From the NCBI GenBank assembly GCA_002104905.1, contig MCFE01000684.1, forward strand, positions 1-45,951: DNA of 45,951 bases, read 5' to 3'. Source of the DNA: Basidiobolus meristosporus CBS 931.73 (Eukaryota; Fungi; Basidiobolomycota). Of the stretch, positions 5,462-45,951 are shown piece after piece (position 1 is the stretch's first letter; every line of letters starts with the position of its first letter). The translations under genes were made by a program, and so were the position numbers. Under the pieces are notes generated by a model that saw only the letters and a list, made by a program, of their open reading frames with translations, ran no database searches and was not told where the DNA came from.

Positions 5462-7469
5462 CCATCTCTATAGTTCGGTGGCAAGCACTAGCAAGGTCGA
5501 GATATGCTGCCAATCCTGTGGCTACGAATGCGCAGGGTGTGAAATGTGATCATTGTACTCATTCTGTGCGCTGGTTGGACGCTCAATGGAAGTGTAATAA
5601 TGTGACTCAAGTTTGTTGGCATTTCCCATGGTCCAGAGTGGCGGGGGCGGGAATTTAATCGGGTGATATTTATATATATCGGGTCTTAGCACACATGCAC
5701 TTGTAGAGCATACCGGCCAAAATTTCGAGAATAAACGGAACGTTGTAGCCGTAGGAGCAAAATGTGCTGTCCATCTGAGCCATTGACTGTGATAGGGAGC
5801 TCGGCATTTTGCATCCAGCATGCACACACCGTAGCGATATTGATGTCACGGAACACCAGGCTCGCCAATGGCTGGCCACAGTCCGCGGGCTAGATTGTAG
5901 AATTCCTCGATTCCTGCACGGTGTTCTAATCCCGATGACATGGTAGTGCTCAACAATGGCCAAAGGGCTCGGCGAATGATAGCCAGCCTCGACTCTGAAA
6001 TGTATCTGGTCCTTCTCCAGCACAACTGTGGACACATCCCATTTGCACAGAGCAATGGTGCATTGCTGGCTAATTATAGCGTGCTTCTGATCACTCGGAG
6101 GAAAACCAAGCGAATAAACAGCATTGCTGACCAGTGTGGAAATACCGCGCTGTCGGCAGCCAACCCAAACCTGATTTGCTCATGATCTGCGAATTGGCAC
6201 CAGAGCAGAGGCTCAACTGTCACCAGCTGATCAGAGATTACAGCCATGATAGCCTGATCTCTGCCGCTCCTCAATCTCTGCGCATCCCCATCGTGATGGA
6301 CAAGCCAGCGGGCGAATGGCGGTGCCCCATCGAATATTAGCCTCAAGGGCAGAAACACCGCTCATCTGGCCTCCAGTCAACTCCTGTTCAAAGGTGGAAT
6401 CCTGCGATCCAGTGATTGGAATGATCAGCATTGAAAACACCTGCATCATGTGAATGAACCTTACGGCACATGCATGGTATCATCCCCACCGATGTATGCG
6501 TATCCCATGGTGAAACACCGTCGTTTACAAATCATTCTCCCAGCAGAGGATATGTGTAACCCACCTACCTTTGCAACACCAGGACTCGGCCTCTACGCTT
6601 GGAGCCCATCTAAACAAGTTTCTAAAGCACATAATTTCCTGATCGCAACAGCACCAATACACAACCAATACTGCCTGCTCCGTACTGGTTTTCATCAACA
6701 ACCAACTGGCTCAGCGGCAAGCAATCTGTCCAATGGGACCACACGCACAGAGTACATATCCATGTTGTATCGGTTGCATTCAATCCTGAATGCTGCTTCT
6801 ATCGCGCAGTATCCTATTTGTTGGCGGCCCGCTGAGAACACTCAAACGAGGTACTGACACATAAGCAGTGCGCTCTTCGCGCCGGGGGTGGTGTGGGTTG
6901 ATTTAATGAATCGATTGCAATCTTCAGCATGATGCCACCCAAACCAAACCTTATGTGCGTGCAATCGTACAAATGTAACCAGAAACAATCACTTTGCACG
7001 GAATCATTATTCATCCCGCCTAATTACAAATCACTCTGCTCCTTTCCTCTGCACCTGCCTTATTTTTTTCTCTTTTTCCCAATTTTTTTCTCAACTGGAA
7101 TCATCTCGATATTATCACCGCACAATCAAATCACCTGACCCTCATTCGATCTGGTGATTTCGACGCATTGTATCAGCCAACTATCAACTACTTGACATTC
7201 ATCTCCGTATCTATTATCCTCTCTTCATCGTATTTCCTGCCCACCCATCACCACTTCCTCCTAAATAAGCTTCGCCACTCTCGCCCTTCCGTCACGAAAC
7301 CCAAGCCTCATCCCACACTGCAGAGAGTCAACGTAAAGGCCAGCACTTTTAGTACAGCTTGCCTCCCCCAAACCATCCACTCTTCGTATTGCTGGTACCA
7401 GTTGAAGCACGCTTCCTGACCTTTTGCTAGTTGGCTGTGACCCAAGTTCCCCCTCCTCCTCTGCACACC

Positions 7470-30995: not shown

Positions 30996-33321
30996 AAGCT
31001 CACGAGACTGCTATAATTGGCTGTAAATAAATCCACGAGTTGACCTTAAGCACTTCTTGGAACGGATGTCCCTGCCATACTACAACCTATATCTCGCCAT
31101 ATTAGCCAATCATAGACTTAATCTGGATTGCTGGATATGCCCCAAGATGGATATCAAGAAATTCTGAGTGCATTAGCGCCTATTCAGATGGATTAGTCCA
31201 GCTTAGATCGGCGTTCATAATCTGGATCACCAGGGTGTGTAAATCACTCGTAGAAATTGATCCTTGCCCAGAGTGGACAATTTTGCAGCCAGGATTGGAA
31301 TCCTTAATGGTTTGCTACTCTCACATGGTAAATGATAGTGCCACGTTGCCGGCCTCGGTAAAGAACCCGGCATTCTTTTCAAGATAAGCAAACGTATCAT
31401 TGGGAAGCTATTCTACAACAATGGGAAGTGCATATCGGGTTGCATCGTGGCACCTTTGCTTTTTATTGGACATCCACGTTCAGATGGGGTTTATTTAAGG
31501 GTTCGGGCCAATAAAATAAAGAGCACGAATGAGTCTTCCTCACGACGCGGGCCAGTGGTTGAACCATAAATCAATCCGACTATTTGCCAAGACTGACGTA
31601 GGCGGCCCATGAAGGAATTTTTGAAACCATCCTCTCGAGGTAACAGTGAGAATCATTGAAATGGCCGAGATGGTGTTGAGGTTGGACTGGAGTATTCATA
31701 GATCAAGGCCTGCTGGTGACTGACTACAAATCCGGTGCACATGGCACCAAGAGCTTCAAGCCACATTGGATCCAGCTACTGATCAGATGGGGCGCTAGAT
31801 TTGGAAATTGATCATCTTTCGATTGTCGGTGTTCCCAAACATCATGAATCTCTGCACCTAGTACGCATTGTTTGATGCCATTTTTAGAAAACCAACGCTC
31901 GCCTCGGTCCCTAGAGCCTGTGGGGCTGGATTTTTGGGGGGAGTCATGAGGATGGCCATGAGTCGCACGCACTCCAACAGGATTCCTTGAAACACTCTGC
32001 ATACACAACAAAACGGATCCTTGTCATACATGATTTACAAGCCTCGTTGCTGTTGAATTTCCCATTGGCACATCGCAACTGATTCTAAGGAACCAACCAG
32101 GTAATGTGCGTTCAACACTTCCCAGACAGGTAAGACAATTCTTGATTGATCTGTTGATCCAATAGACATCGTTCAGGCATTTGGCTTCAATGGAGATGTG
32201 TTTAGTGTAACGTTCCACCCAATCTTTCCCATTAAGCACTTGGTTTGTTCCCCAGATGAGTAGTCTAGCTGTACGCTGGTGTTGTTGCGAACCATGGAGT
32301 GCCAAGACCAGTATGATTGTCCTTCTGGATACAACGCGGATTCCAATAATAACTGGCGGAAATGAACAATATTGACAACTTGGGATTGATGCTTTTCTAG
32401 AAGTAGCTCCATCCCGTTATAGTAGCACTGACGTGATTGTGGCCTTTACGAATATTTGCCGAGTCACTTCCGTATTTCTGTGGTAGCGATGATATGAAGT
32501 TTACAAATCGGCATCCGTTGAATAACCTTGGGTTCGAGTAAGACGTGTGCTTTCGCATGAGAAACATACTTCCAAAAACTCTTTCATCTGATGGGAGAGT
32601 AGTAGGATAAACACGAGAATTTCATCGAACGATTCCATATCTTTCGACCCATAACTCACCTATTCCGGGGAATGGGTTTTCAATTACAAAACGTGTTCCA
32701 GCGTAGTGGCGGGGTGGGGTCTTTTATAAATCTTCTAGAAATATCGTCTTTTCCCATTCCAACAGGGACCGAATACACTAGTTGCGAAAGCCATCAATGT
32801 TAGTCTCTTCACGAAGGGCTGCTCGCCGAAATATGATGCCATTCTTGGGGACTTCAACGGTTATATCGATGGGATCAGCGTTGTTCATCGCCTGATCCAT
32901 CGTTGTTCATATAGATTGGCTTTTACTGCCTCAACAAGGTCCGCCGCAGTAATTGGCGCCTAGGCGTCGTCGAGGCTAAAACCGTTGAGGCCTTACCAAA
33001 GCCTGGCCCCTATTTAAGGAGTACTTCATCACATTGAGCGTAAGCAGATTACATAATTGAGACGAAAGCGGGATCTTGATTGGGTGGTGCCTGTCACTGA
33101 AGTCAATCATAAGCGTAGATTTTATGTGACACTACCATCAATTTGTTTGTGGATCAAAATATTGGCAAGCACATGCTATGCATCGAGCCTAAAAGCGTCT
33201 CACCAGGCGAAATCCAATTGTTGACGAGTAGTCAAAATGATTGATGTGAGCAATAATGCAGTCAGCTAAGACAATATTATTTAAAGAATATGTATGACTG
33301 CTATGGCTAGTGTTGGAATTC

Positions 33322-33343
33322 TTAGGGTTGGGGTTAAGGGTTT
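33322..33343 (+). repeat. Degenerate telomere-like repeats TTAGGG TTGGGG TTAAGGG
   Basis: Read directly; coincides with the start of the CpG-depleted, transposon-only region. Confidence 0.6.
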
Positions 33344-33862: not shown

Positions 33863-34053
33863 TTAGGGGGGTTAGGGGGAGACTGTCACCAACAGGTGAA
33901 ATCTTTGTTTCAGCTGAAACAACAAAGCCAGCACTACTGTTGTAGCTTTCAAACATGAGTGTGTAGGTGAGGGGAATTTGTAGGTAAGTTAGTCAGGAGA
34001 GATGATAGTTCTTCAGTGCTTATGACACTGTTCAGTGGGAAGGGGGTTAGGGG
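33863..34053 (-). mobile_element. LINE copy E: ~175-bp old, extremely 5'-truncated 3' end flanked by TTAGGG(G)n on both sides
   Basis: 33881-34046 aligns with the 3' end of copies A-C with many substitutions. It is preceded by TTAGGGGGGTTAGGGGG and followed by TTAGGGG. Confidence 0.85.
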
Positions 34054-34402: not shown

Positions 34403-36009
34403 AGGGGGGGGGAGAAAGTCACCAACAGGTGAGATCTTTATTTCAGTTGAAACAAAGAAGCCAGTGCTACTGTTGTTGCTTTGATACAAGAGTGTGTAGC
34501 TGAGGGGAATTTGTAGGTAAGCTAATAACAAGTGATGATAGTTCTTCAGTGCTCAAGACACTGTTCAGGGGGAAGGGTGGTAGCAAGAGGGGTAAGAATG
34601 ATTTGCAAGCAACATTAATGAGGGGAATATGATAAGGATTGATATTCAACATAAAGGGAGTGTCCTGCTTCAAATATTTTTGCCAAAGGTCTGTCAAGTA
34701 CTTTAGGTAGGCCAGTTTGGAATTTTCCAACTGCAGAATATAGTGAGCAAGCTTTTTGACTTCAGGATCTCCAAGTATAGTTCTCCAGCAGGAGCCAGGT
34801 GTAGTGTGGTGTGTTCTCTTCCAGGCATTGATCAGCAGGTTGTGCAGTGGTAAAGTCTGAGATATAATCTGGTTCTAAGGTAGAGAAGTCTGATCTTATA
34901 GGGCATAAACCCAAAACACCAAGAAAAGCATGTCTGTAAGGGCTTCCAGGCAGATGAGGCACCAAGGAGGCAATACACCAGACTGCAAGTGTATCAAGCT
35001 TAGTGCAGTCTCTAGAAGTAAGAGAGAGAAGTGGTAAACCAAATTTCATGACAGGGAAGACAAGCAGCTTGAGTAGAAGGAGGCAGCTGGGAGCTGAGGT
35101 TGTAGGAGAAGTAACAGCCAGTAGCTTGTGGAGTGCCAGTCTTGCAAGGATAATTCTCTTCTTCAAGTGTGCTCCAAAGTCAAGTCTAGTGGGAAAGATA
35201 GGAAAGCCAAGATATGTTGCAGAAACCTGAGCTGGTAGAGTGCAGTTCTCCAAGTTGATAGGACAACCCAAAGGTAATAGACTTGTTCCATCATTCCAGC
35301 TGATCATAGTGCCCAATAGTGCCATAGCATGCCAGATAGTGCCTGATCATGCCACAGAGTGCCAGATGGTGCCATACAGTGCCAATTTGGGATCAAAATT
35401 GACATGCATATGGCCCTAAAATATCAAATTAATAATAAAAAATACAGCACTCTCTGGCACTATGATCAGTGGCACAATGGAACAAGTCTACTGTCTTTGC
35501 AATGGAAAGCTGGATATTATTCTTCTGCAGATACTAGTGGATGGTCTGGGAGTCTTGTTGCACATTATAGGAGGATATTCTGATGTCATCAGCAAACAGA
35601 GTAACCAGGCAGTCAGCTGACAGTCTTAGGAAATCATTCAGGAAGATTGCAAACAGTATAGGGTCAAGAACAGAGCCTTGAACCACTCCATTAGGAACTG
35701 ATAACACAGCTGCTTGCTCACTTGGGTGCAGAATTCTTGCTTGTGGATCCAGAAACAGAGACCTGACAAGGAGAGTGAGGGAGGTACTGGAGAAGCATTG
35801 CAACTTGGACCAAAGCAGATTTTTGTCAACTGAATCAAAGGCCTTAGTAATATCAAGCAGAACAGAGGGATACTTGCACTGGAGAGAGTGATCTCAGCTA
35901 AGTATGACTGCATATTCCAAGGAGAGGCCAGGAACAATGCCAAACTGTGCAGGGTGAGACTTAAGGGAGTTAGAGTAGAGCTCCTGAGCAATCAGAAGCT
36001 CAAACACCT
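34403..36009 (-). mobile_element. LINE copy D: older, diverged RT/3' fragment interrupted by a MITE and ending at an LTR
   Basis: Colinear with copies A/B from the G-run to AAACACCT. The RT remnant NGVVQGSVLDPILFAIFLND...FADDI carries stops and frameshifts. Confidence 0.9.
35278..35490. mobile_element. MITE-like insertion (~213 bp) with ~35-bp imperfect terminal inverted repeats
   Basis: Absent from copies A/B at AAAGGTA|CTGTC. The ends are TAGACTTGTTCCAT...ATGGAACAAGTCTA, with inner arms CTGATCATAGTGCC / GGCACTATGATCAG. Confidence 0.88.
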
Positions 36010-36623
36010 TGTTGTATCCAAGAGAAAAGTGTAATAAAACTCTTGAATGAGTTAACTGAACCTAAGTGACAACTAAGTGCAGAACCTTAGAATTATCAAG
36101 AGTGTCAGAAATATTAGCAGAGAGGTTCTGATCTAATATTAGTCTTATATATAGCTGAGTTGGGCTATAAAGGTAACAGAGTAGGTTTGCTATGCAGGCT
36201 AGGCTTGGTGTTCTTGAGAGTGCTAAATATCCTAAGCTTGGGTAGAAACTAGAATGGATTTGTTGAATTCTTAATTTTGTTGAGACACAGACTAAACCAA
36301 AAGGTTCAGTAAACTTTATTTATACTTTTCTGATTGAGTTGCATTAGTAAGCACCAAGAGACTGGACTAATTGAAATCTGTTGGGGTGTTGATAGGTGCA
36401 TAAGATAAATGAAAAATTGCATCATTAATCAGCTGATGTCTTGGCAACTGCTAAGTGGTTGGATAAATCTCAGATGACTAATCACTTGGAAAGGCTTAGC
36501 AGATCAGTTGAGTATGTAATGACCACATGATAATTAATCAGGTGTGACAGCTAAAAATAGATTCTGAGAAGTGATAAAATAAATCATAACAGGGATTAGT
36601 TATGTTTGTGTTGTGCATCAACA
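36010..36623 (-). mobile_element. LTR (614 bp), inverted relative to the homologous LTR at 36685-37303
   Basis: Termini TGTTG...CAACA; its reverse complement aligns along its length with 36685-37303. No TSD is seen. Confidence 0.75.
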
Positions 36624-36684
36624 TTTAAAACTTAGCCAATTTTACTCCATTTGAAATTCTAGTACCCTAACTGACTTTCCCTAA

Positions 36685-37303
36685 CCCAAACATAACAAAT
36701 CCCAGTTACAGTTTATTTTATCCCACCTCAGAATCTATTTTTAGCTATCACACCTGATCTATTTTCAAATGGTCATTACGTTATCCACATATCTGCCAAG
36801 CCTTCCCAGGTGACTAGTCATCTGAGATCTATCCAACCACTGTGCAGTTGCCAAGACATCAGTTGATTGATGATGTAGTTTTCATTTATCTTATGCACCT
36901 ATGAACACCCAAGTTGATTTCTATCAATCCAGTCCCTTGGCGCTTACTAATTCAACTTGATCAGAAAAGTATAAATAAAGTTTACTGAACCTTTTGGTTT
37001 AGTGTGTGTCTCAACAAAATTAAGATTCTGTCTCAGCAAAAATAAGAATCCAACAATTCCGTTCTAGTTTCTATCCAAGCCTAGTATATCTAGCACTCCA
37101 AAGAACACCAAGCCTAGCCTGCCTAGCAAACAAATATCATTGTCTTTATAGCCAACCCAGCTATATCCAAGACCAATATTAGATCAGAATCTTTCTGCTA
37201 ATATTTCCGCCACTCTGACAATTCTAAGATTCTGCACTTAATTGTCCCTTTGGTTCAGTTAAACCATTCAAGAGTTTTATTACACTTTCTCTTGGATACA
37301 ACA
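36685..37303 (+). mobile_element. LTR of the same family, probably the 5' LTR of a decayed element
   Basis: Ends in GATACAACA; has a TATA-like GTATAAATA at ~36969; a gag-like ORF follows. The 5' TG terminus is not clear. Confidence 0.7.
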
Positions 37304-37692: not shown

Positions 37693-37991
37693 TTTGGGGC
37701 TTGTTCTACAATGTAGAGGCTAATCAACAATATACAACAACTTCCAGTATGCTAATACTGAAATAGTTTATTGGGAGTTTGATATACCAATAGAAGATAT
37801 AACTTTCACTAATTTCCTCAATCTTAGGCTCAAAATATACTGTAGGCAGTGTTTATCACTTCTACAGCAGTGTTCTGACCTTCTGTTGACTAATGGGCTT
37901 ATTTACTTTTATAGTAACTTTTCCTTATTTGGAAGTCACTTTCCTTTCTGAGAAAATATTTCCTAATATGGAAATTCTGAGCTCCCCTTTA

Positions 37992-38236
37992 ACCTAAAGG
38001 GGTGTGTTGTAGAAGTCTCTAAAGGGGTCTTTAGACCTAAAGGGGTGTCTAAAGGGGTGTCTTTAGAGTAAAGGGGCTTCTTGTAGTGGTCTCTAAAGTG
38101 GACTTTACACTAAAGGGGTGCCTAAAGGGGCTTCTTTAGAGTAAAGGGGTTTCTTAAAGGGGTCTCTAAAGGGGTCTTTAGACTAAAGGGGTGTCTAAAG
38201 GGGTGTCTTTAGAGTAAAGGGGTTTCTTAGAGGGGA
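37992..38236 (+). repeat. TAAAGGGG-core minisatellite with 73-bp higher-order period
   Basis: CTTTAGAGTAAAGGGG recurs at 38061, 38134 and 38207. Sub-units are 17/12/13/19/12 bp. Confidence 0.9.
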
Positions 38237-38394
38237 CTTTTCCAACAGAAAAGTGGTAGTTTCTTGTAGAACTTAGATTGGATTCTTGTGAGCTTTGCAG
38301 TCTCTTTACTGATGTAGTACCGATCAAAGTCAGAATACTCAACAGTGCAAGTGATGCAGGGGAAGTCTTATAACCTTTAAACTTGTAATTGTAG

Positions 38395-38921: not shown

Positions 38922-39971
38922 CTAACTTTGAGAAATAATGCCCTCATTATTACTTCTGATATGGAACTTCTTCAATCTGTTACCAGGTTGTGTCAGTGCA
39001 AGTGGTGTACCGTCAAGTTCTGCTAGTTTGTAAGATCCATTTTTGTTTGCATGTATGATCTTGTAGGGACCTTGCCATCGCATATCCAGCTTGGATGCCT
39101 TGTTTCTTTGGCTTTTTGTGTTGTGAAGTAGTATCAACTCACCTACTTCTAACAATGTTTTTCTTAGGCATTTTTGAGCGTCAAAGTACTCCTTGCCAGC
39201 CATTCTGGATTTCTTCAGGTTTTCTATTGCATTCTGTTGCAGAGTGTGTGCTTGTTGAATCTGTTGTACTCTTGCTAGCAATAGCTCTGATGTTGTTGTT
39301 GTTGGTTTCCATGGGAGGGTAAGCCAATTCTCAAAAGATATGTCTATCGGCAAAACAGCATCATGTCCATATATTAAAAAAAATGGTGTATACCCTGTAC
39401 TTCTTTTAACCGTGACTCTATCAGACCAAATTGCTGCATGAAAGTTATTTGCCCATTTGTTGGGTTCTTCATAGCTAAGCTTTGCTAATGTGTTTGCAAA
39501 AGCAGAATGTCCATGTTCAACTGGTGAGTTTGCTTGTGGGTGATATGGCATAGTATGTATAAGCTTGGTTCCATGCTTTGTTGCTAGTGCTTGTATTTCA
39601 TAAGATCCACATTCTCCATTGTCTGCAATAAGGGTGCCAACTGAACCATGTCTGAGATATACATCTTCTTTGAGAAATCTTGCTACTGCTTTTGCATTGG
39701 CTTGTTTTAGCATTCTAGCCTCTATCCAACCAGTAAAGTTATCACGACAGTCCACCACATACTTATACCCAGCTGTTGCCCTTGGTAAATGTATAATATC
39801 TACATGTGCAATTTGCCAAGCATAAGATGTGTATATACTGTGAAGTGGTTCATGCATCTTTTGGTTGTCTCTTCTTTGACATGGAATACATGATTTCACA
39901 TATTCTTTTGTGTTGGTGTAAAGTGTTGGCCAAAAATACCGTAAGGAGATTTTTGCATATGTTGATGTAAT
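38922..39971 (-). pseudogene. Ty3/Gypsy integrase, 5'-truncated inside the HHCC zinc finger
   Basis: YFWPTLY...VKSCIPCQRR, AHVDII, RDNFTGWIEA, IADNGE, YHPQANSPVE and WQGPYKI (GPY/F motif). The upstream pol is missing. Confidence 0.92.
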
Positions 39972-39988
39972 TAGGGTAGGGGGGGGGG
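39971..39988 (+). repeat. Telomere-like junction TTAGGG TAGGGGGGGGGG
   Basis: Read directly between the integrase and the 3' end of LINE copy A. Confidence 0.85.
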
Positions 39989-41876
39989 AGACAGTCACCA
40001 ACAGGTGAAATCTTTATTTCAGTTGAAACAAAGAAGCCAGCGCTACTGTTGTAGCTTTGATACAAGAGTGTGTAGCTGAGGGGAATTTGTAGGTAAGTTA
40101 ATAAGAAGTGATGATAGTTCTTCAGTGCTCAAGACACTGTTCAGTGGGAAGGGGGGTAGCAAGAGAGGTAAGAATGACTTGTGAACAACATTAATGAGGG
40201 GAATGTGATAAGGATTGATATTCATCATAAAGGGAGTGTGCTGCTGCAGATATTGCTGCCAAAGGTCTGTCAAGTACTTCAGGTAGGCCAGCTTGGGTTT
40301 TTCTGACTGCAGAATATAGTGAGCAAACTTCTTGACTTCAGGATCTCCAAGTATAGTTCTCCAGCAGGAGTCAGGTGTTGTGTGGTGTGTTCTCTTCCAG
40401 GCCTTAATCAGTGGGTTGTTGCAGTTGTGAAGTCTGAGGTATAATCTGGTTCTAAGGTAGAGAAGTCTGATCTTATAGGGCATAAACCCAAAAGCACCAA
40501 GAATAGCATGTCTGTAGGGGCATTGAGGCAAATGAGGCACCAAGGAGGTAATGCACCATACTGCAAACTTGTCAAGCTTAGTGCAGTCTCTAGAAGTAAG
40601 AGAGAGAAGTGGTAAGCCAAATTCCAGGACAGGGAAGACAAACTGCTTGAGTAGAAGGAGGCAGCTGGGAGCTGAAGTTGTAGGAGGAGTAACAGCCAGT
40701 AGCTTGTGGAGTGCCTGTCTTGCCAGGATAATTTGCTTCTTCAGGTGTGCTCCAGAGTCTAGTCCAGTAGGAAGGAAAGGAAAGCCAAGATATGTAGCAG
40801 AAACCTGAGCAGGTAGAGTGGAGTTCTCCAAGTTGATGGGAGAGCCCAAAGGTACTGTCTTTGCAATGGAAAGCTGGAGATTATTCTTCTGCAGATACTG
40901 GTGGATGGTCTGGGAGTCTTGTTGCACATTGGAGGAGGATATTCTGATGTCATCAGCAAAGAGAGTAACCAGGCAGTCAGCTGAGAGTCTTGGGAAATCA
41001 TTCAGGAAGATGGCAAACAGTATAGGACCAAGCACAGACCTTGAACCACTCCATTAGGAACTGAGAACACAGCTGATTGCTCACTTGGGTGCAGAATTCT
41101 TGCTTGTGGATCCAGAAACAGAGACCTGACAAGGAGGGTGAGAGAGGTACTGGAGAAGCATTGCAACTTGGACCAAAGCAGATTTCTGTCAACTGAATCA
41201 AAGGCCTTAGTAATATCAAACAGAACAGAGGGATACTTGCACTGGAGAGAGTGATCTTGGCTAAGTATGACTGCATATTCCAAGGAGAGGCCAGGAACAA
41301 AGCCAAACTGTGCAGGATGAAACTTGAGGGAGTCAGAGTAGAGCTCCTGAGCAAGCAGAAGCTCAAACACCTTTCTGCAGGTGGGCAGCAGAGATATTGG
41401 CCTGTAGGAGCTAGGATCCAGGTGCTTTCCTTTACCCTTGTACAGTGGCAGAACATTTGCAAAGGACCATTCCTCAGGAGTAGAAAGCTGGGCTGAGCAT
41501 TGCTGAAACAGTGGAAGCAGAAGTGCAGACATGGCCTTGGTACTAGTCTTCAGAAGCTCATAGGAGATTGTGTCCACACCTGGAGCAGTAGAGTTGGGAA
41601 GCCTCTTGAGCACATTATGGATTCTCTTTGATCAAGTGCAAGTGGGATGGGCAGAGTCTTGAAGTCAGGATGAAAGCCAGGAGTTGAGTACTGCTTTGTA
41701 GAGAAGAAGATGTTAGCCAGCTGTTCTGTTGAAGGTAACTTCCTGGAAGAGGGCTCATTGCCTGTAGAGTCTTGATACTGTTCTTGTTATAGAGTTGAAG
41801 ATTGCAGAGCAAGATCATAATGATCAGAGTGAGTATGCAGAGTGTGTGAATGCTGGAGTGTGTATGCTGTCAGAGG
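39979..41876 (-). mobile_element. LINE copy A: young, 5'-truncated (~1.9 kb), RT plus 3' end
   Basis: Nearly identical to 41880-43790. RT motifs YRPISLL, QFGF, FDITKAFDSV and FADDI are present, with single-base frameshifts at ~41038 and ~41626. Confidence 0.95.
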
Positions 41877-41939
41877 TTAGGGGGGAGACAGTCACCAACA
41901 GGTGAAATCTTTATTTCAGTTGAAACAAAGAAGCCAGCG

Positions 41940-44708
41940 CTACTGTTGTAGCTTTGATACAAGAGTGTGTAGCTGAGGGGAATTTGTAGGTAAGTTAATA
42001 AGAAGTGATGATAGTTCTTCAGTGCTCAAGACACTGTTCAGTGGGAAGGGGGGTAGCAAGAGAGGTAAGAATGACTTGTGAACAACATTAATGAGGGGAA
42101 TGTGATAAGGATTGATATTCATCATAAAGGGAGTGTGCTGCTGCAGATATTGCTGCCAAAGGTCTGTCAAGTACTTCAGGTAGGCCAGCTTGGGTTTTTC
42201 TGACTGCAGAATATAGTGAGCAAACTTCTTGACTTCAGGATCTCCAAGTATAGTTCTCCAGCAGGAGCCAGGTGTTGTGTGGTGTGTTCTCTTCCAGGCC
42301 TTAATCAGTGGGTTGTTGCAGTTGTGAAGTCTGAGGTATAATCTGGTTCTAAGGTAGAGAAGTCTGATCTTATAGGGCATAAACCCAAAAGCACCAAGAA
42401 TAGCATGTCTGTAGGGGCATTCAGGCAAATGAGGCACCAAGGAGGTAATGCACCATACTGCAAACTTGTCAAGCTTAGTGCAGTCTCTAGAAGTAAGAGA
42501 GAGAAGTGGTAAGCCAAATTCCAGGACAGGGAAGACAAACTGCTTGAGTAGAAGGAGGCAGCTGGGAGCTGAAGTTGTAGGAGGAGTAACAGCCAGTAGC
42601 TTGTGGAGTGCCTGTCTTGCCAGGATAATTCTCTTCTTCAGGTGTGCTCCAGAGTCTAGTCCAGTAGGAAGGAAAGGAAAGCCAAGATATGTAGCAGAAA
42701 CCTGAGCAGGTAGAGTGGAGTTCTCCAAGGTTGATGGGAGAGCCCAAAGGTACTGTCTTTGCAATGGAAAGCTGGAGATTATTCTTCTGCAGATACTGGT
42801 GGATGGTCTGGGAGTCTTGTTGCACATTGGAGGAGGATATTCTGATGTCATCAGCAAAGAGAGTAACCAGGCAGTCAGCTGAGAGTCTTGGGAAATCATT
42901 CAGGAAGATGGCAAACAGTATAGGACCAAGCACAGAGCCTTGAACCACTCCATTAGGAACTGAGAACACAGCTGATTGCTCACTTGGGTGCAGAATTCTT
43001 GCTTGTGGATCCAGAAACAGAGACCTGACAAGGAGGGTGAGAGAGGTACTGGAGAAGCATTGCAACTTGGACCAAAGCAGATTTCTGTCAACTGAATCAA
43101 AGGCCTTAGTAATATCAAACAGAACAGAGGGATACTTGCACTGGAGAGAGTGATCTTGGCTAAGTATGACTGCATATTCCAAGGAGAGGCCAGGAACAAA
43201 GCCAAACTGTGCAGGATGAAACTTGAGGGAGTCAGAGTAGAGCTCCTGAGCAAGCAGAAGCTCAAACACCTTTCTGCAGGTGGGCAGCAGAGATATTGGC
43301 CTGTAGGAGCTAGGATCCAGGTGCTTTCCTTTACCCTTGTACAGTGGCAGAACATTTGCAAAGGACCATTCCTCAGGAGTAGAAAGCTGGGCTGAGCATT
43401 GCTGAAACAGTGGAAGCAGAAGTGCAGACATGGCCTTGGTACTAGTCTTCAGAAGCTCATAGGAGATTGTGTCCACACCTGGAGCAGTAGAGTTGGGAAG
43501 CCTCTTGAGCACATTATGGATTCTCCTTTGATCAAGTGCAAGTGGGATGGGCAGAGTCTTGAAGTCAGGATGAAAGCCAGGAGTTGAGTACTGCTTTGTA
43601 GAGAAGAAGATGTTAGCCAGCTGTTCTGTTGAAGGTAACTTCCTGGAAGAGGGCCTCATTGCCCTGTAGAGTCTTGATACTGTTCTTGTTATAGAGTTGG
43701 AAGATTGCAGAGGCAAGAACTCATAATATGATCCCAGAGCTGAGTATGCAGAGTGTGGTGAATTGCCTTGGAGTGGTGTATTGCTGTCAGGAGGAGTTTC
43801 TCTGTTTTTGGGTTAGGGAAACTCAGGTAGCTTTGTTGCAGGGCTGAAACAATGGATTCCCATTTTCTTGAGGTAACAGCAGTAGTCTTGCATGGCAGTG
43901 AGAGGGAGGCAGACACCAGAATCAGATGCTTCACAAAGAGCCAGGCATAGTTGAGATCATCTGGCAGAGAAAGTAGCAAACTGGCAAGCTTCAAGTAGTT
44001 CCCAAAGTCTTTCTTCTGATTCTTGGTAGCTTTGTGGGTGAGCACAGTAAGTTTTGGCAGCTTCTTCTTCACAACTGGTTGCATAGAAAGGGACCAGGCT
44101 GGGTGGTCAGAGGCTCTCAAGGATCCTAGCTCAGCTCCAGAGAATTGCTTAACTTCATTCACAAAGTAGAGGGCAGCAGCAGAAGGGCAGATCCAGTCAA
44201 CACATCTTTTCTCAGATTGAGCACCTAGTGCTAGCAGATGGCTTTCTCTCAGGAAGTTCAGTAGGAATGTAGACCTTGGCTTCATTCTTGCAGTCAGAGT
44301 AGTCTTGTTCTCAGGATGGGGAATGTTGAGATCTCCAAGCAAGATAATAGGTGTTGATATAGATTGCTGGTATTGCTGAACTTTCTGGCATATAACTTGC
44401 ACTTCCTGAAGGGCAAGACTTGGAGGCAGATAGCAGAGCACCAGACTGATAGTTGGCAACTGGAGAGCAGCACAGTAAGGGGAGTAAAGAGGAACACAGA
44501 GCTGAGGAGTATTGATGGTAGAAGAGATGAAGCAGATAGAGGAGGTATTCTTTGTTCTAGGAGTAGAAAAGCAATATAGATTAGTCAAAAGTATAGAGGG
44601 TAGCTGGACATCAATCAAACACAGGAGGGAAAATCTTGAAAGAAGTCTCTCTAGAGTTGGTCTTGATGGCTGTATGCTGTTGCAGTTAAGCAACAGAACT
44701 TCAGGTAG
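41940..44708 (-). CDS. LINE ORF2 (APE endonuclease-reverse transcriptase), ~920 codons when frameshifts are repaired from sister copies
   Basis: Joined from ORFs 43689-44693, 42487-43716 and 41940-42899. The extra G at ~42730 is absent in copies A and D, and there is an indel cluster at 43640-43795. Confidence 0.85.
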
Positions 44709-45116
44709 TCAGGCAGAGGTTGTAGCTTCTTCAGAGGCAGCATTGACAATGTGACCTGCAGAGTCCCAGAGCTCTTCAAATGGTGCATCACTTAAGTCAG
44801 CAAGGAGGGAAATGGCATGATTCTTGAGGAAGTATGCCACATCATAGGAGGGGGCTTGTCTCTTGATGGCAGCAAAGAAAGACAGAATGGCAACATGGGC
44901 TGGAGGCTTGTTGAACAGTAGAGAGTCAGAGGATTCAGATTCTTCAGGCACTATCTTGAAGTCAGTTTTCAGCCAGTTAAGGTTCTTCTCCACAAAGGCA
45001 ACAAATGGGTCAGCAATGTTTTGGTCTAGGATAACCTCCAGAATCTTCCCTTTTCTCCAGGCCAGGTTGACAATTCTTGAGAGCTGAATATTGCATGCTT
45101 GAGTGCTTCTGATGTT
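44709..45116 (-). CDS. LINE ORF1, C-terminal part (no ATG; probably 5'-truncated)
   Basis: Open frame RIVNLAWRKGKILEVILDQNIADPFVAFVEKNL...EEATTSA*, in the same frame as ORF2. Confidence 0.6.
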   Translation of the reverse strand, partial: NIRSTQACNIQLSRIVNLAWRKGKILEVILDQNIADPFVAFVEKNLNWLKTDFKIVPEESESSDSLLFNKPPAHVAILSFFAAIKRQAPSYDVAYFLKNHAISLLADLSDAPFEELWDSAGHIVNAASEEATTSA

Positions 45117-45150
45117 GAATGGGAGTCAGGGAATGCTTCAGTACACACAG

Positions 45151-45169
45151 TAGGTAGGGTTAGGGGGGG
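45151..45169 (+). repeat. Telomere-like junction TAGG TAGGG TTAGGGGGGG
   Basis: Read directly between the 5' end of copy B and the 3' end of copy C. Confidence 0.85.
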
Positions 45170-45951
45170 AGACAGTCACCAACAGGTGAAATCTTTATTT
45201 CAGTTGAAACAAAGAAGCCAGCGCTACTGTTGTAGCTTTGATACAAGAGTGTGTAGCTGAGGGGAATTTGTAGGTAAGTTAATAAGAAGTGATGATAGTT
45301 CTTCAGTGCTCAAGACACTGTTCAGTGGGAAGGGGGGTAGCAAGAGAGGTAAGAATGACTTGTGAACAACATTAATGAGGGGAATGTGATAAGGATTGAT
45401 ATTCATCATAAAGGGAGTGTGCTGCTGCAGATATTGCTGCCAAAGGTCTGTCAAGTACTTCAGGTAGGCCAGCTTGGGTTTTTCTGACTGCAGAATATAT
45501 TGAGCAAACTTCTTGACTTCAGGATCTCCAAGTATAGTTCTCCAGCAGGAGCCAGGTGTTGTGTGGTGTGTTCTCTTCCAGGCCTTAATCAGTGGGTTGT
45601 TGCAGTTGTGAAGTCTGAGATATAATCTGGTTCTAAGGTAGAGAAGTCTGATCTTATAGGGCATAAACCCAAAAGCACCAAGAATAGCATGTCTGTAGGG
45701 GCATTCAGGCAAATGAGGCACCAAGGAGGTAATGCACCATACTGCAAACTTGTCAAGCTTAGTGCAGTCTCTAGAAGTAAGAGAGAGAAGTGGTAAGCCA
45801 AATTCCAGTACAGGGAAGACAAACTGCTTGAGTAGAAGAAGGCAGCTGGGAGCTGAAGTTGTAGGAGGAGTAACAGCCAGTAGCTTGTGGAGTGCCTGTC
45901 TTGCCAGGATAATTCTCTTCTTCAGGTGTGCTCCAGAGTCTAGTCCAGTAG
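45163..45951 (-). mobile_element. LINE copy C: young copy running off the window end
   Basis: Nearly identical to the 3' 0.8 kb of A and B, with a few private SNPs (e.g. ATATATTGAG, CCAGTACAGG). Confidence 0.95.

Follow-up and report, generated by a model that had tools for sequence, protein, structure and literature searches.

The window analysed here comprises the 45,951 nucleotides (nt) of contig MCFE01000684.1 (positions 1 to 45,951; assembly GCA_002104905.1) of the fungus Basidiobolus meristosporus CBS 931.73. It starts with host genes and continues into a distal block of repeats, in which copies of one retrotransposon that is devoid of long terminal repeats (LTRs; a non-LTR retrotransposon), i.e. 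a long interspersed nuclear element (LINE), are stacked head-to-tail in one orientation, in the order E, D, A, B and C, all on the minus strand. The focus of this work is copy B (41880-45163, minus strand, 3284 nt), which is truncated at its 5' end and belongs to a lineage that has lost practically all of its CG dinucleotides (CpG) while its reading frames have been kept. Its direct neighbors are copy A (39983-41879), which corresponds to 1.9 kb at the 3' end of the element and carries 1-nt deletions of its own, and copy C (45164-45951), which is cut by the end of the window; each has one CpG, located at the same lone site as the only CpG of copy B. Copy D (34407-36010) is older and 92-95% identical to copy B, copy E (33874-34050) is an old 3' fragment, and both are devoid of CpG, the lone site reading TG and CA, respectively, on the plus strand.

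The CpG content changes abruptly within the window. In the host sequence (1-32900) the observed/expected ratio (o/e) of CpG is 0.77, and in the seven host open reading frames (ORFs) with Pfam support it is 0.78. CpG-poor is the entire block distal to ~33225, beyond copy B alone, with an o/e of 0-0.03 in the LINE copies and of 0.10-0.25 in the non-LINE repeats. The last dense CpG is found at 33225, ~100 nt proximal to the first telomere-like junction (33322-33333, plus strand), and this sharp border (33225-33333) seems to mark an old chromosome end. In a preliminary description of this DNA the host genes had been called CpG-rich; their CpG content is indeed higher than that of the LINE, but an o/e of 0.77 is near normal rather than high.

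CpG depletion of copy B and its lineage

With the expectation derived from base composition, the region 41880-45150 (3271 nt, GC content 46%) should contain 163.2 CpGs. A single one is present (41938-41939; o/e 0.006), and the reversed dinucleotide, GC, occurs 185 times. The Poisson probability of finding at most one CpG is ~2e-69, or ~3e-53 if the host-gene o/e of 0.77 is taken as the expectation. The lone CpG is the first dinucleotide on the 3' side of the stop codon of ORF2 (41940-41942, minus strand), i.e. in the 3' untranslated region (UTR). Both the near-absence of CpG over ~3.27 kb, where on the order of 100 or more had been roughly estimated, and the position of the sole survivor just after the stop codon had been noted in the preliminary description and are borne out here.

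The depletion is CpG-specific and confined to the repeats, where TpG and CpA reach an o/e of 1.1-1.6, and the GC content of the LINE is unchanged (46% vs 47% in the gene region). On the sense strand of the LINE TpG (1.64) exceeds CpA (1.13), and CWG trinucleotides are in excess. In the non-LINE repeats of the block, a fragment of an LTR-retrotransposon integrase included, the excess is symmetric (TpG 1.45, CpA 1.55). No enrichment of CCG/CGG was found among the surviving CpGs of the distal block, as 12 of the 29 distinct ones distal to 33226 lie in this context and, by our own count, ~41% would do so by chance; the survivor in the LINE has the context GCGC.

The coding sequence of copy B shows how the proteins were retained without CpG. 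Throughout its 1058 codons all 39 Arg residues are encoded by AGA or AGG and none by CGN, which accounts for 62% of the Arg codons in host ORFs, and NCG codons are missing altogether. Written in host codon usage, the same protein would carry 142 ± 9 CpGs. Moreover, a codon ending in C never precedes a codon starting with G, whereas 55 ± 5 such pairs occur in synonymous shuffles, and the third base is T before 58% of the G-starting codons as compared to 32% overall. As codon borders are affected in the same way as Arg and NCG codons, the avoidance acts on the dinucleotide and does not reflect codon preference. Two comparisons proposed in the preliminary description have been made here, CpG o/e (0-0.03 in the LINE, 0.77 in genes) and the use of CGN and NCG codons (none of either in copy B).

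A relative of the element, termed L001, is found on a 4.6-kb contig of an ENA metagenome assembly and is present in a Logan assembly too. Copy B aligns to positions 1028-4280 of L001 with 76.7% nucleotide identity over 3.28 kb, both have the same 3' tail, and the ORFs called in L001 encode 434, 251 and 664 amino acids. L001 contains no CpG in ~4.28 kb, its 5' region included, whereas 193 are expected, and for copy B and L001 pooled the upper 95% bound on the CpG o/e is 0.013. Over 988 codons the two differ by a synonymous divergence (dS) of 1.39, with a ratio of nonsynonymous to synonymous divergence (dN/dS) of 0.105. Synonymous sites are thus nearly saturated, and for most of this period the proteins evolved under purifying selection, but CpG is found in neither lineage apart from the lone site. 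Additionally, the five copies of the window and three copies at the end of contig MCFE01000090.1 of the same assembly (L003), one of which is 98.6% identical, are free of CpG save for the lone site and three private new CpGs. The CpG-free state was thus either inherited or reached twice, and it is maintained in functional lineages instead of resulting from the decay of single copies. This agrees with the earlier suggestion that CpG was lost in a lineage with its reading frames kept, and the possibility raised there, that each copy had been depleted independently after insertion, does not hold in view of L001 and the other copies.

Element architecture and chromosome-end arrangement

The copies in the window (177, at least 788, 1604, 1897 and 3284 nt) share a common 3' end, vary in their 5' truncation and are devoid of LTRs, in line with a LINE. 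Copy B encodes a reverse transcriptase (RT) domain (42751-43314, minus strand; Pfam RVT_1, 89 bits, cut-off 29.6), whose best likeness among solved structures is the RT of human L1 ORF2p (E 2.6e-11). Upstream in the element, part of an apurinic-type endonuclease (APE) domain may be recognized (44100-44447, minus strand; Exo_endo_phos_2, 23 bits, below the cut-off of 27.4). The counterpart in L001 gives a weak Exo_endo_phos match over profile positions 3-225 (23.1 bits, below the cut-off of 24.5). Despite their low scores the matches to the two profiles extend over the full profile length, and a comparison of the endonuclease sequence with the PDB gave no match. From these sub-cut-off Pfam matches we tentatively assign the element to the APE-type LINEs. 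The nearest RT relatives outside Basidiobolus are only ~35% identical, and two scans of metagenome contigs yielded no close relatives but two loci only, at 33% identity. Cnl1 of Cryptococcus, which was suggested by the junctions of TTAG and a G-run, was rejected as the identity of the element, since Cnl1 belongs to a clade with a restriction-enzyme-like (REL) endonuclease a near-identical copy of our element is present in B. meristosporus, and a weaker protein match bears the name of this strain.

As to composition, among 96 relatives the RT protein of L001 (L001:2226-4220) has the highest content of Leu (17.5%) and Pro (7.8%), while Asn, Lys, Ile and Glu are scarce in it, and CTG is 2.8-fold over-represented in copy B.

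Copies A and C differ from copy B by four substitutions each (0.2% and 0.5%, the latter corresponding to 99.5% identity). The earlier view of copy B as young is therefore correct, whereas it is not nearly intact. It starts at about nt 992 of L001, so that at least 0.99 kb is absent, corresponding to about the first 280 codons, or about two thirds, of ORF1. The truncated ORF1 ends with a TGA stop codon (44709-44711, minus strand) and is followed by ORF2 in the same frame, the layout being the same in L001. ORF2 of copy B is interrupted by two frameshifts, one at 43712-43718 (minus strand), where copy B is one base short as compared to L001 (near 43714), and one at 42728-42730 (minus strand), where it has one extra C as compared to copy A (near 42729). 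We looked at both sites in contigs from a public run of the same organism (X1), for which all numbers are counts of contigs and represent neither copy numbers nor exact shares. At the first site 11 X1 contigs (9 + 2) carry the added base, as does a contig of a second sample (X5) with few contigs, and at the second site 30 X1 contigs and one X5 contig are without the extra C. X5 thus has the unbroken state at both sites, although its contigs, like those of X6 and X7, span short pieces of the element only. Assembly errors may contribute to such single-base insertions and deletions. The unbroken contigs in X1 and X5 imply that copies with an open frame exist, and copy B is a recent copy that was dead on arrival, being 5'-truncated and frameshifted.

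A single frame of L001 comprises ORF1 and the portions encoding the endonuclease and the RT, with an in-frame TGA (1449-1466) and an in-frame TAG (2217-2219) between them. At the position of the latter copy B has TGG, and its ORF1 and ORF2 are in frame across the TGA. The in-frame stops may be read through, or L001 may just have acquired a nonsense mutation.

At every border of a copy a TTAGGG-like unit is found together with a long G-run, the G-strand pointing distally. Between copies A and B this telomere-like junction (TTAG followed by a G-run) is located at 41877-41885 (plus strand), and similar junctions are found at 45155-45169, 39971-39988, 33863-33879 and 34047-34053; the terminal telomere tract itself lies outside the window. 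The same stacking between telomere-like repeats is present in L001 and in L003. The latter, a second chromosome end with three copies of the family, contains 33 CpGs over 9.7 kb, where 404 are expected, and then passes into genes of normal CpG content. Moreover, many different 5' truncation points are joined to position 41880 via telomere-like letters in the X1 contigs. Taken together, the copies are attached in head-to-tail order to the telomere repeats with which B. meristosporus chromosomes end. The borders with their G-runs and TTAGGG-like units imply an element RNA that ends in a C-run plus the complement of the telomere repeat and not in poly(A).

Several further features of these chromosome ends deserve mention. 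The 5' end of copy A (41740-41876) has 18 single-base deletions relative to copy B within ~140 nt and nearly no substitutions, a cluster that could stem from an inaccurate final phase of reverse transcription or from an assembly error. At 38922-40001 a broken integrase ORF of an LTR retrotransposon (Pfam rve and Integrase_H2C2) is capped by the junction 39971-39988 and the 3' end of copy A, which gives the impression that the chromosome had broken within this retrotransposon, that the break was healed and that the LINE subsequently lengthened the end. The interval from copy D to copy A contains two CpG-poor repeat arrays, i.e. nested inverted repeats of 1.26 kb that would form a long hairpin (36026-37288) and a 73-nt tandem repeat (37963-38255). 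L003 holds other elements (L003:454-638, 1962-2158 and 6150-6185) whose 3' tail resembles that of the LINE without being the same and precedes CCCCTAA; these elements presumably represent partner families.

Frequent mutation of CpG in inserted DNA

The lone site allows the fate of a CpG to be followed after insertion. Of the eight assembled copies, the four young ones retain CpG at this site, whereas each of the four older ones has lost it, reading CA in three cases and TG in one on the sense strand. As the three CA copies have a few other markers in common, the minimum is two independent losses, one per strand, with CG taken as the ancestral state by parsimony only. In X1, C>T is seen at this site in 68 contigs and G>A in 71. 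Elsewhere in the element a listed variant reaches at least 10% of the word depth in X1 at only 21 of the 3284 positions, and none of these creates a CpG. The decay of the lone site in both directions, to TG in copy D (34465-34466) and to CA in copy E (33932-33933) as read on the plus strand, had been noticed in the preliminary description, and the contigs, with both transitions in nearly equal numbers, bear it out.

The predicted fold of the 3' UTR (41876-41960, minus strand) consists of three hairpins (-23.5 kcal/mol, z -3.6), and the C of the lone CpG is paired in the first predicted stem.

New CpGs are also scarce in older copies. These differ from copy B at 207 sites, and ~22 new CpGs would be expected if changes of the same kinds had occurred at random, whereas one is present. 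In a young dead copy (L003:639-1613), however, two new CpGs are found among 13 substitutions, matching the expectation of 2.0. By our own count nine of the 12 private changes of this copy that are listed in the alignment are transversions, and the two CpGs were created by A>C changes; this odd spectrum may result from errors of the long-read assembly. As a possible trace of changes that had passed through CpG, adjacent CA<->TG double differences were counted alongside AC<->GT controls, with 5 vs 4 between close copies and 8 vs 6 in the comparison with L001.

Causes and meaning of the CpG-free state

Candidate proteins for CpG methylation are known from the literature. According to a published supplement (PMC10538959) B. 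meristosporus possesses DNMT1 (ORX99839) and UHRF1 (ORX90637), two Dim-2-like proteins (ORX98566 and ORX84408), as well as HELLS and a CDCA7-like protein, whereas DNMT5 and DNMT4/RID were not detected. In transposons of Zymoseptoria, 5-methylcytosine (5mC) deposited by Dim2 raises the rate of mitotic C>T mutation (10.1101/2020.03.27.012203).

Based on our findings we consider it probable that hypermutation, combined with ordinary purifying selection on the proteins of the element, is the main cause of the CpG-free state. A CpG-specific hypermutation would act on repeated DNA of the B. meristosporus genome, the most probable agent being the deamination of 5mC deposited by DNMT1/UHRF1 and/or the Dim-2-like enzymes, and the rate at which CpGs are removed would exceed the rate of change at other sites by a factor of tens to hundreds. 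The only lineages to persist under purifying selection would then be those in which each CpG has been swapped for a tolerated alternative, i.e. AGR for Arg and NNT before G at codon borders, with NCG codons being avoided. The end state would be an element in which nothing is left to methylate or mutate at CpG, and such a state would presumably lower silencing. Irrespective of any contribution of selection, the depletion of dead and non-coding repeats, together with the older dead copies that lack new CpGs, implies that a mutator acting at the level of DNA exists.

Several points weigh against this explanation. In the supplement that lists the methylation proteins the column for measured 5mC is blank for B. 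meristosporus (PMC10538959), and a recent review describes 5mC as near-undetectable in early-diverging fungi (PMC13297926). In a rough calculation that assumes new CpGs to originate evenly throughout the age of a copy, CpG is lost at tens to hundreds of times the ordinary rate, with a lower bound of ~75-fold per dinucleotide, but the counts are small and the differences arose partly at the level of lineages and not after insertion. At equilibrium an o/e of at most 0.013 likewise requires CpG to be lost at least ~75 times as fast as it is gained. The ratio of CpG loss to gain in mammals is ~10-15. The value for the LINE is far above this, and spontaneous deamination alone may be insufficient.

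Rather unlikely, but the best of the alternatives, is that selection for the absence of CpG was needed in addition. Copies free of CpG might escape silencing by methylation, or their genes might be "mutation-proofed" against a CpG mutator that acts in bursts; by either route they would remain active for a longer time and give rise to the following generation of copies. Such selection would explain why the depletion in the LINE (o/e at most 0.013) is more than 10 times deeper than in the neighboring dead repeats (0.10-0.25), why it persists across saturated synonymous divergence and why the sole surviving CpG is non-coding and located directly after the stop codon. Furthermore, the young dead copy in L003 gained CpGs at the neutral expectation, which suggests that new CpGs do arise and are filtered later or at the level of lineages. 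Nevertheless, non-coding and dead repeats of the block are strongly depleted as well, and the older dead copies are without new CpGs. As nearly the whole element is coding, avoidance specific to coding sequence and avoidance throughout the element look the same. Mutation pressure and selection for escape both fit the present data.

An origin at the level of RNA or complementary DNA (cDNA), i.e. RNA-directed restriction of CpG-containing transcripts or a deaminase that edits the RNA or first-strand cDNA, is very improbable. The excess of TpG over CpA on the sense strand of the LINE could hint at strand-specific C>U changes. However, codon borders account for 59% of the host-gene CpGs, and at these borders a synonymous change is possible by C>T on the sense strand only, and the asymmetry follows from selection at codon borders tolerating this change alone. 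Moreover, the non-coding lone CpG decays in inserted DNA by both transitions in nearly equal numbers of contigs, and the non-LINE repeats are CpG-poor too, with symmetric values for TpG and CpA.

A depletion that is confined to repeats and ends abruptly would be in line with repeat-induced point mutation (RIP) in its canonical form, as in Neurospora, yet RIP of this kind is hardly conceivable here and is rejected on the RIP indices. Canonical RIP changes C to T mainly at CpA, which makes its products rich in AT and raises TpA/ApT. In the LINE TpA/ApT is 0.87, and the substrate index (CpA+TpG)/(ApC+GpT) is 1.62, i.e. high where RIP lowers it. In addition, the GC content is the same as in the gene region, TpA has an o/e of 0.62 as compared to 0.63 in host coding sequence, the reading frames are kept at a dN/dS of 0.105, and DNMT4/RID is not listed for B. 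meristosporus (PMC10538959 supplement). The unrelated repeats of the same genome, which are depleted as well, speak against horizontal transfer of the LINE from a CpG-poor donor, e.g. an animal host, whose composition would simply have been kept. Although Basidiobolus inhabits the guts of amphibians and reptiles and the nearest RT relatives outside the genus are so distant, we give this idea almost no credence, since over a divergence as large as a dS of 1.39 the composition of a donor would not have lasted without active maintenance, and the lone CpG decays in place.

A close parallel to the hypermutation proposed here is found in vertebrates, where methylated CpGs of L1 and Alu decay, the o/e settles near 0.2 and CpG-rich promoters are kept. 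As in L1 and Alu, CpG loss in B. meristosporus is restricted to transposons, yields TpG and CpA and involves both transitions at one site, and the organism encodes DNMT1 and UHRF1, like vertebrates. In contrast, the o/e of the Basidiobolus LINE is at most 0.013 over the whole element, and the host is an early-diverging fungus. A replicating parasite that has been recoded without CpG while its proteins are kept is also reminiscent of RNA viruses and retroviruses, whose CpG-suppressed genomes avoid CpG-sensing host factors. The pressure on these viruses acts on RNA, whereas the both-strand decay in inserted copies of the LINE points to DNA.

Among fungi, transposons of Pucciniomycotina undergo a RIP-like hypermutation at TpCpG (Horns et al. 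2012, PMC3318451). This process shares with the one in Basidiobolus the restriction to repeats, the direction of C>T changes to CpG and the stability over long times. It prefers TCG, however, and was described from decayed copies, whereas the Basidiobolus LINE is empty in every context, belongs to a lineage under purifying selection that is without target sites, and resides in another phylum in a species for which RID is not listed. In Zymoseptoria tritici a DNA methyltransferase of the Dim-2 class, of which B. meristosporus has two candidate genes, increases mutation of repeats outside meiosis, but the target there is CpA and not CpG; a role of Dim-2 in Basidiobolus would be by analogy.

With regard to its location, the LINE resembles telomere-associated retrotransposons of other organisms. 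The fungal elements MoTeR, FoTeR and Cnl1 are members of the CRE clade, with an endonuclease of the restriction-enzyme-like type (PMC12857005), and telomere-targeted elements are known from Bombyx (TRAS/SART) and Drosophila (HeT-A/TART; PMC7265360 and PMC5537684). The term CpG is absent from the FoTeR paper (PMC12857005). Like all of these, the Basidiobolus LINE forms one-way, head-to-tail stacks of 5'-truncated copies between telomere repeats. Unlike MoTeR, FoTeR and Cnl1, it would have an N-terminal domain of the APE type, to which the match is weak, and its RT is similar to that of L1 ORF2p. To our knowledge, the other families of telomere retrotransposons have not been reported to possess a body free of CpG.

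The decay of CpG in transposons is known, and the concept of its cause, deamination of 5mC, is also found in PMC12582260. New is a lineage under purifying selection at practically zero CpG in an early-diverging fungus; a literature search found no paper on the CpG-free state of this LINE family. It is unusual for a protein-coding retrotransposon lineage to have stayed at ~zero CpG while its synonymous changes became saturated. Should 5mC be the agent, B. meristosporus would exhibit strong transposon-directed CpG methylation and mutagenesis within a fungal group that is generally described as rich in 6-methyladenine and poor in 5mC. If selection is involved, the LINE would be a clear case of a transposon that has removed the substrate of a host defence. 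As B. meristosporus can be cultured, the mutational and the selective interpretation could be separated experimentally.

Tentatively, and with less confidence than in the contribution of hypermutation itself, we speculate that a repeat-directed CpG mutator, working at tens to hundreds of times the background in a fungus from a group presumed to be poor in 5mC, was answered by the LINEs at the chromosome ends with CpG-free genes, i.e. that selection among copies led to a "target-free", mutation-proof end state of an arms race. As these LINEs build the chromosome ends of B. meristosporus, it may be of importance to telomere maintenance that they are immune to the decay of CpG.

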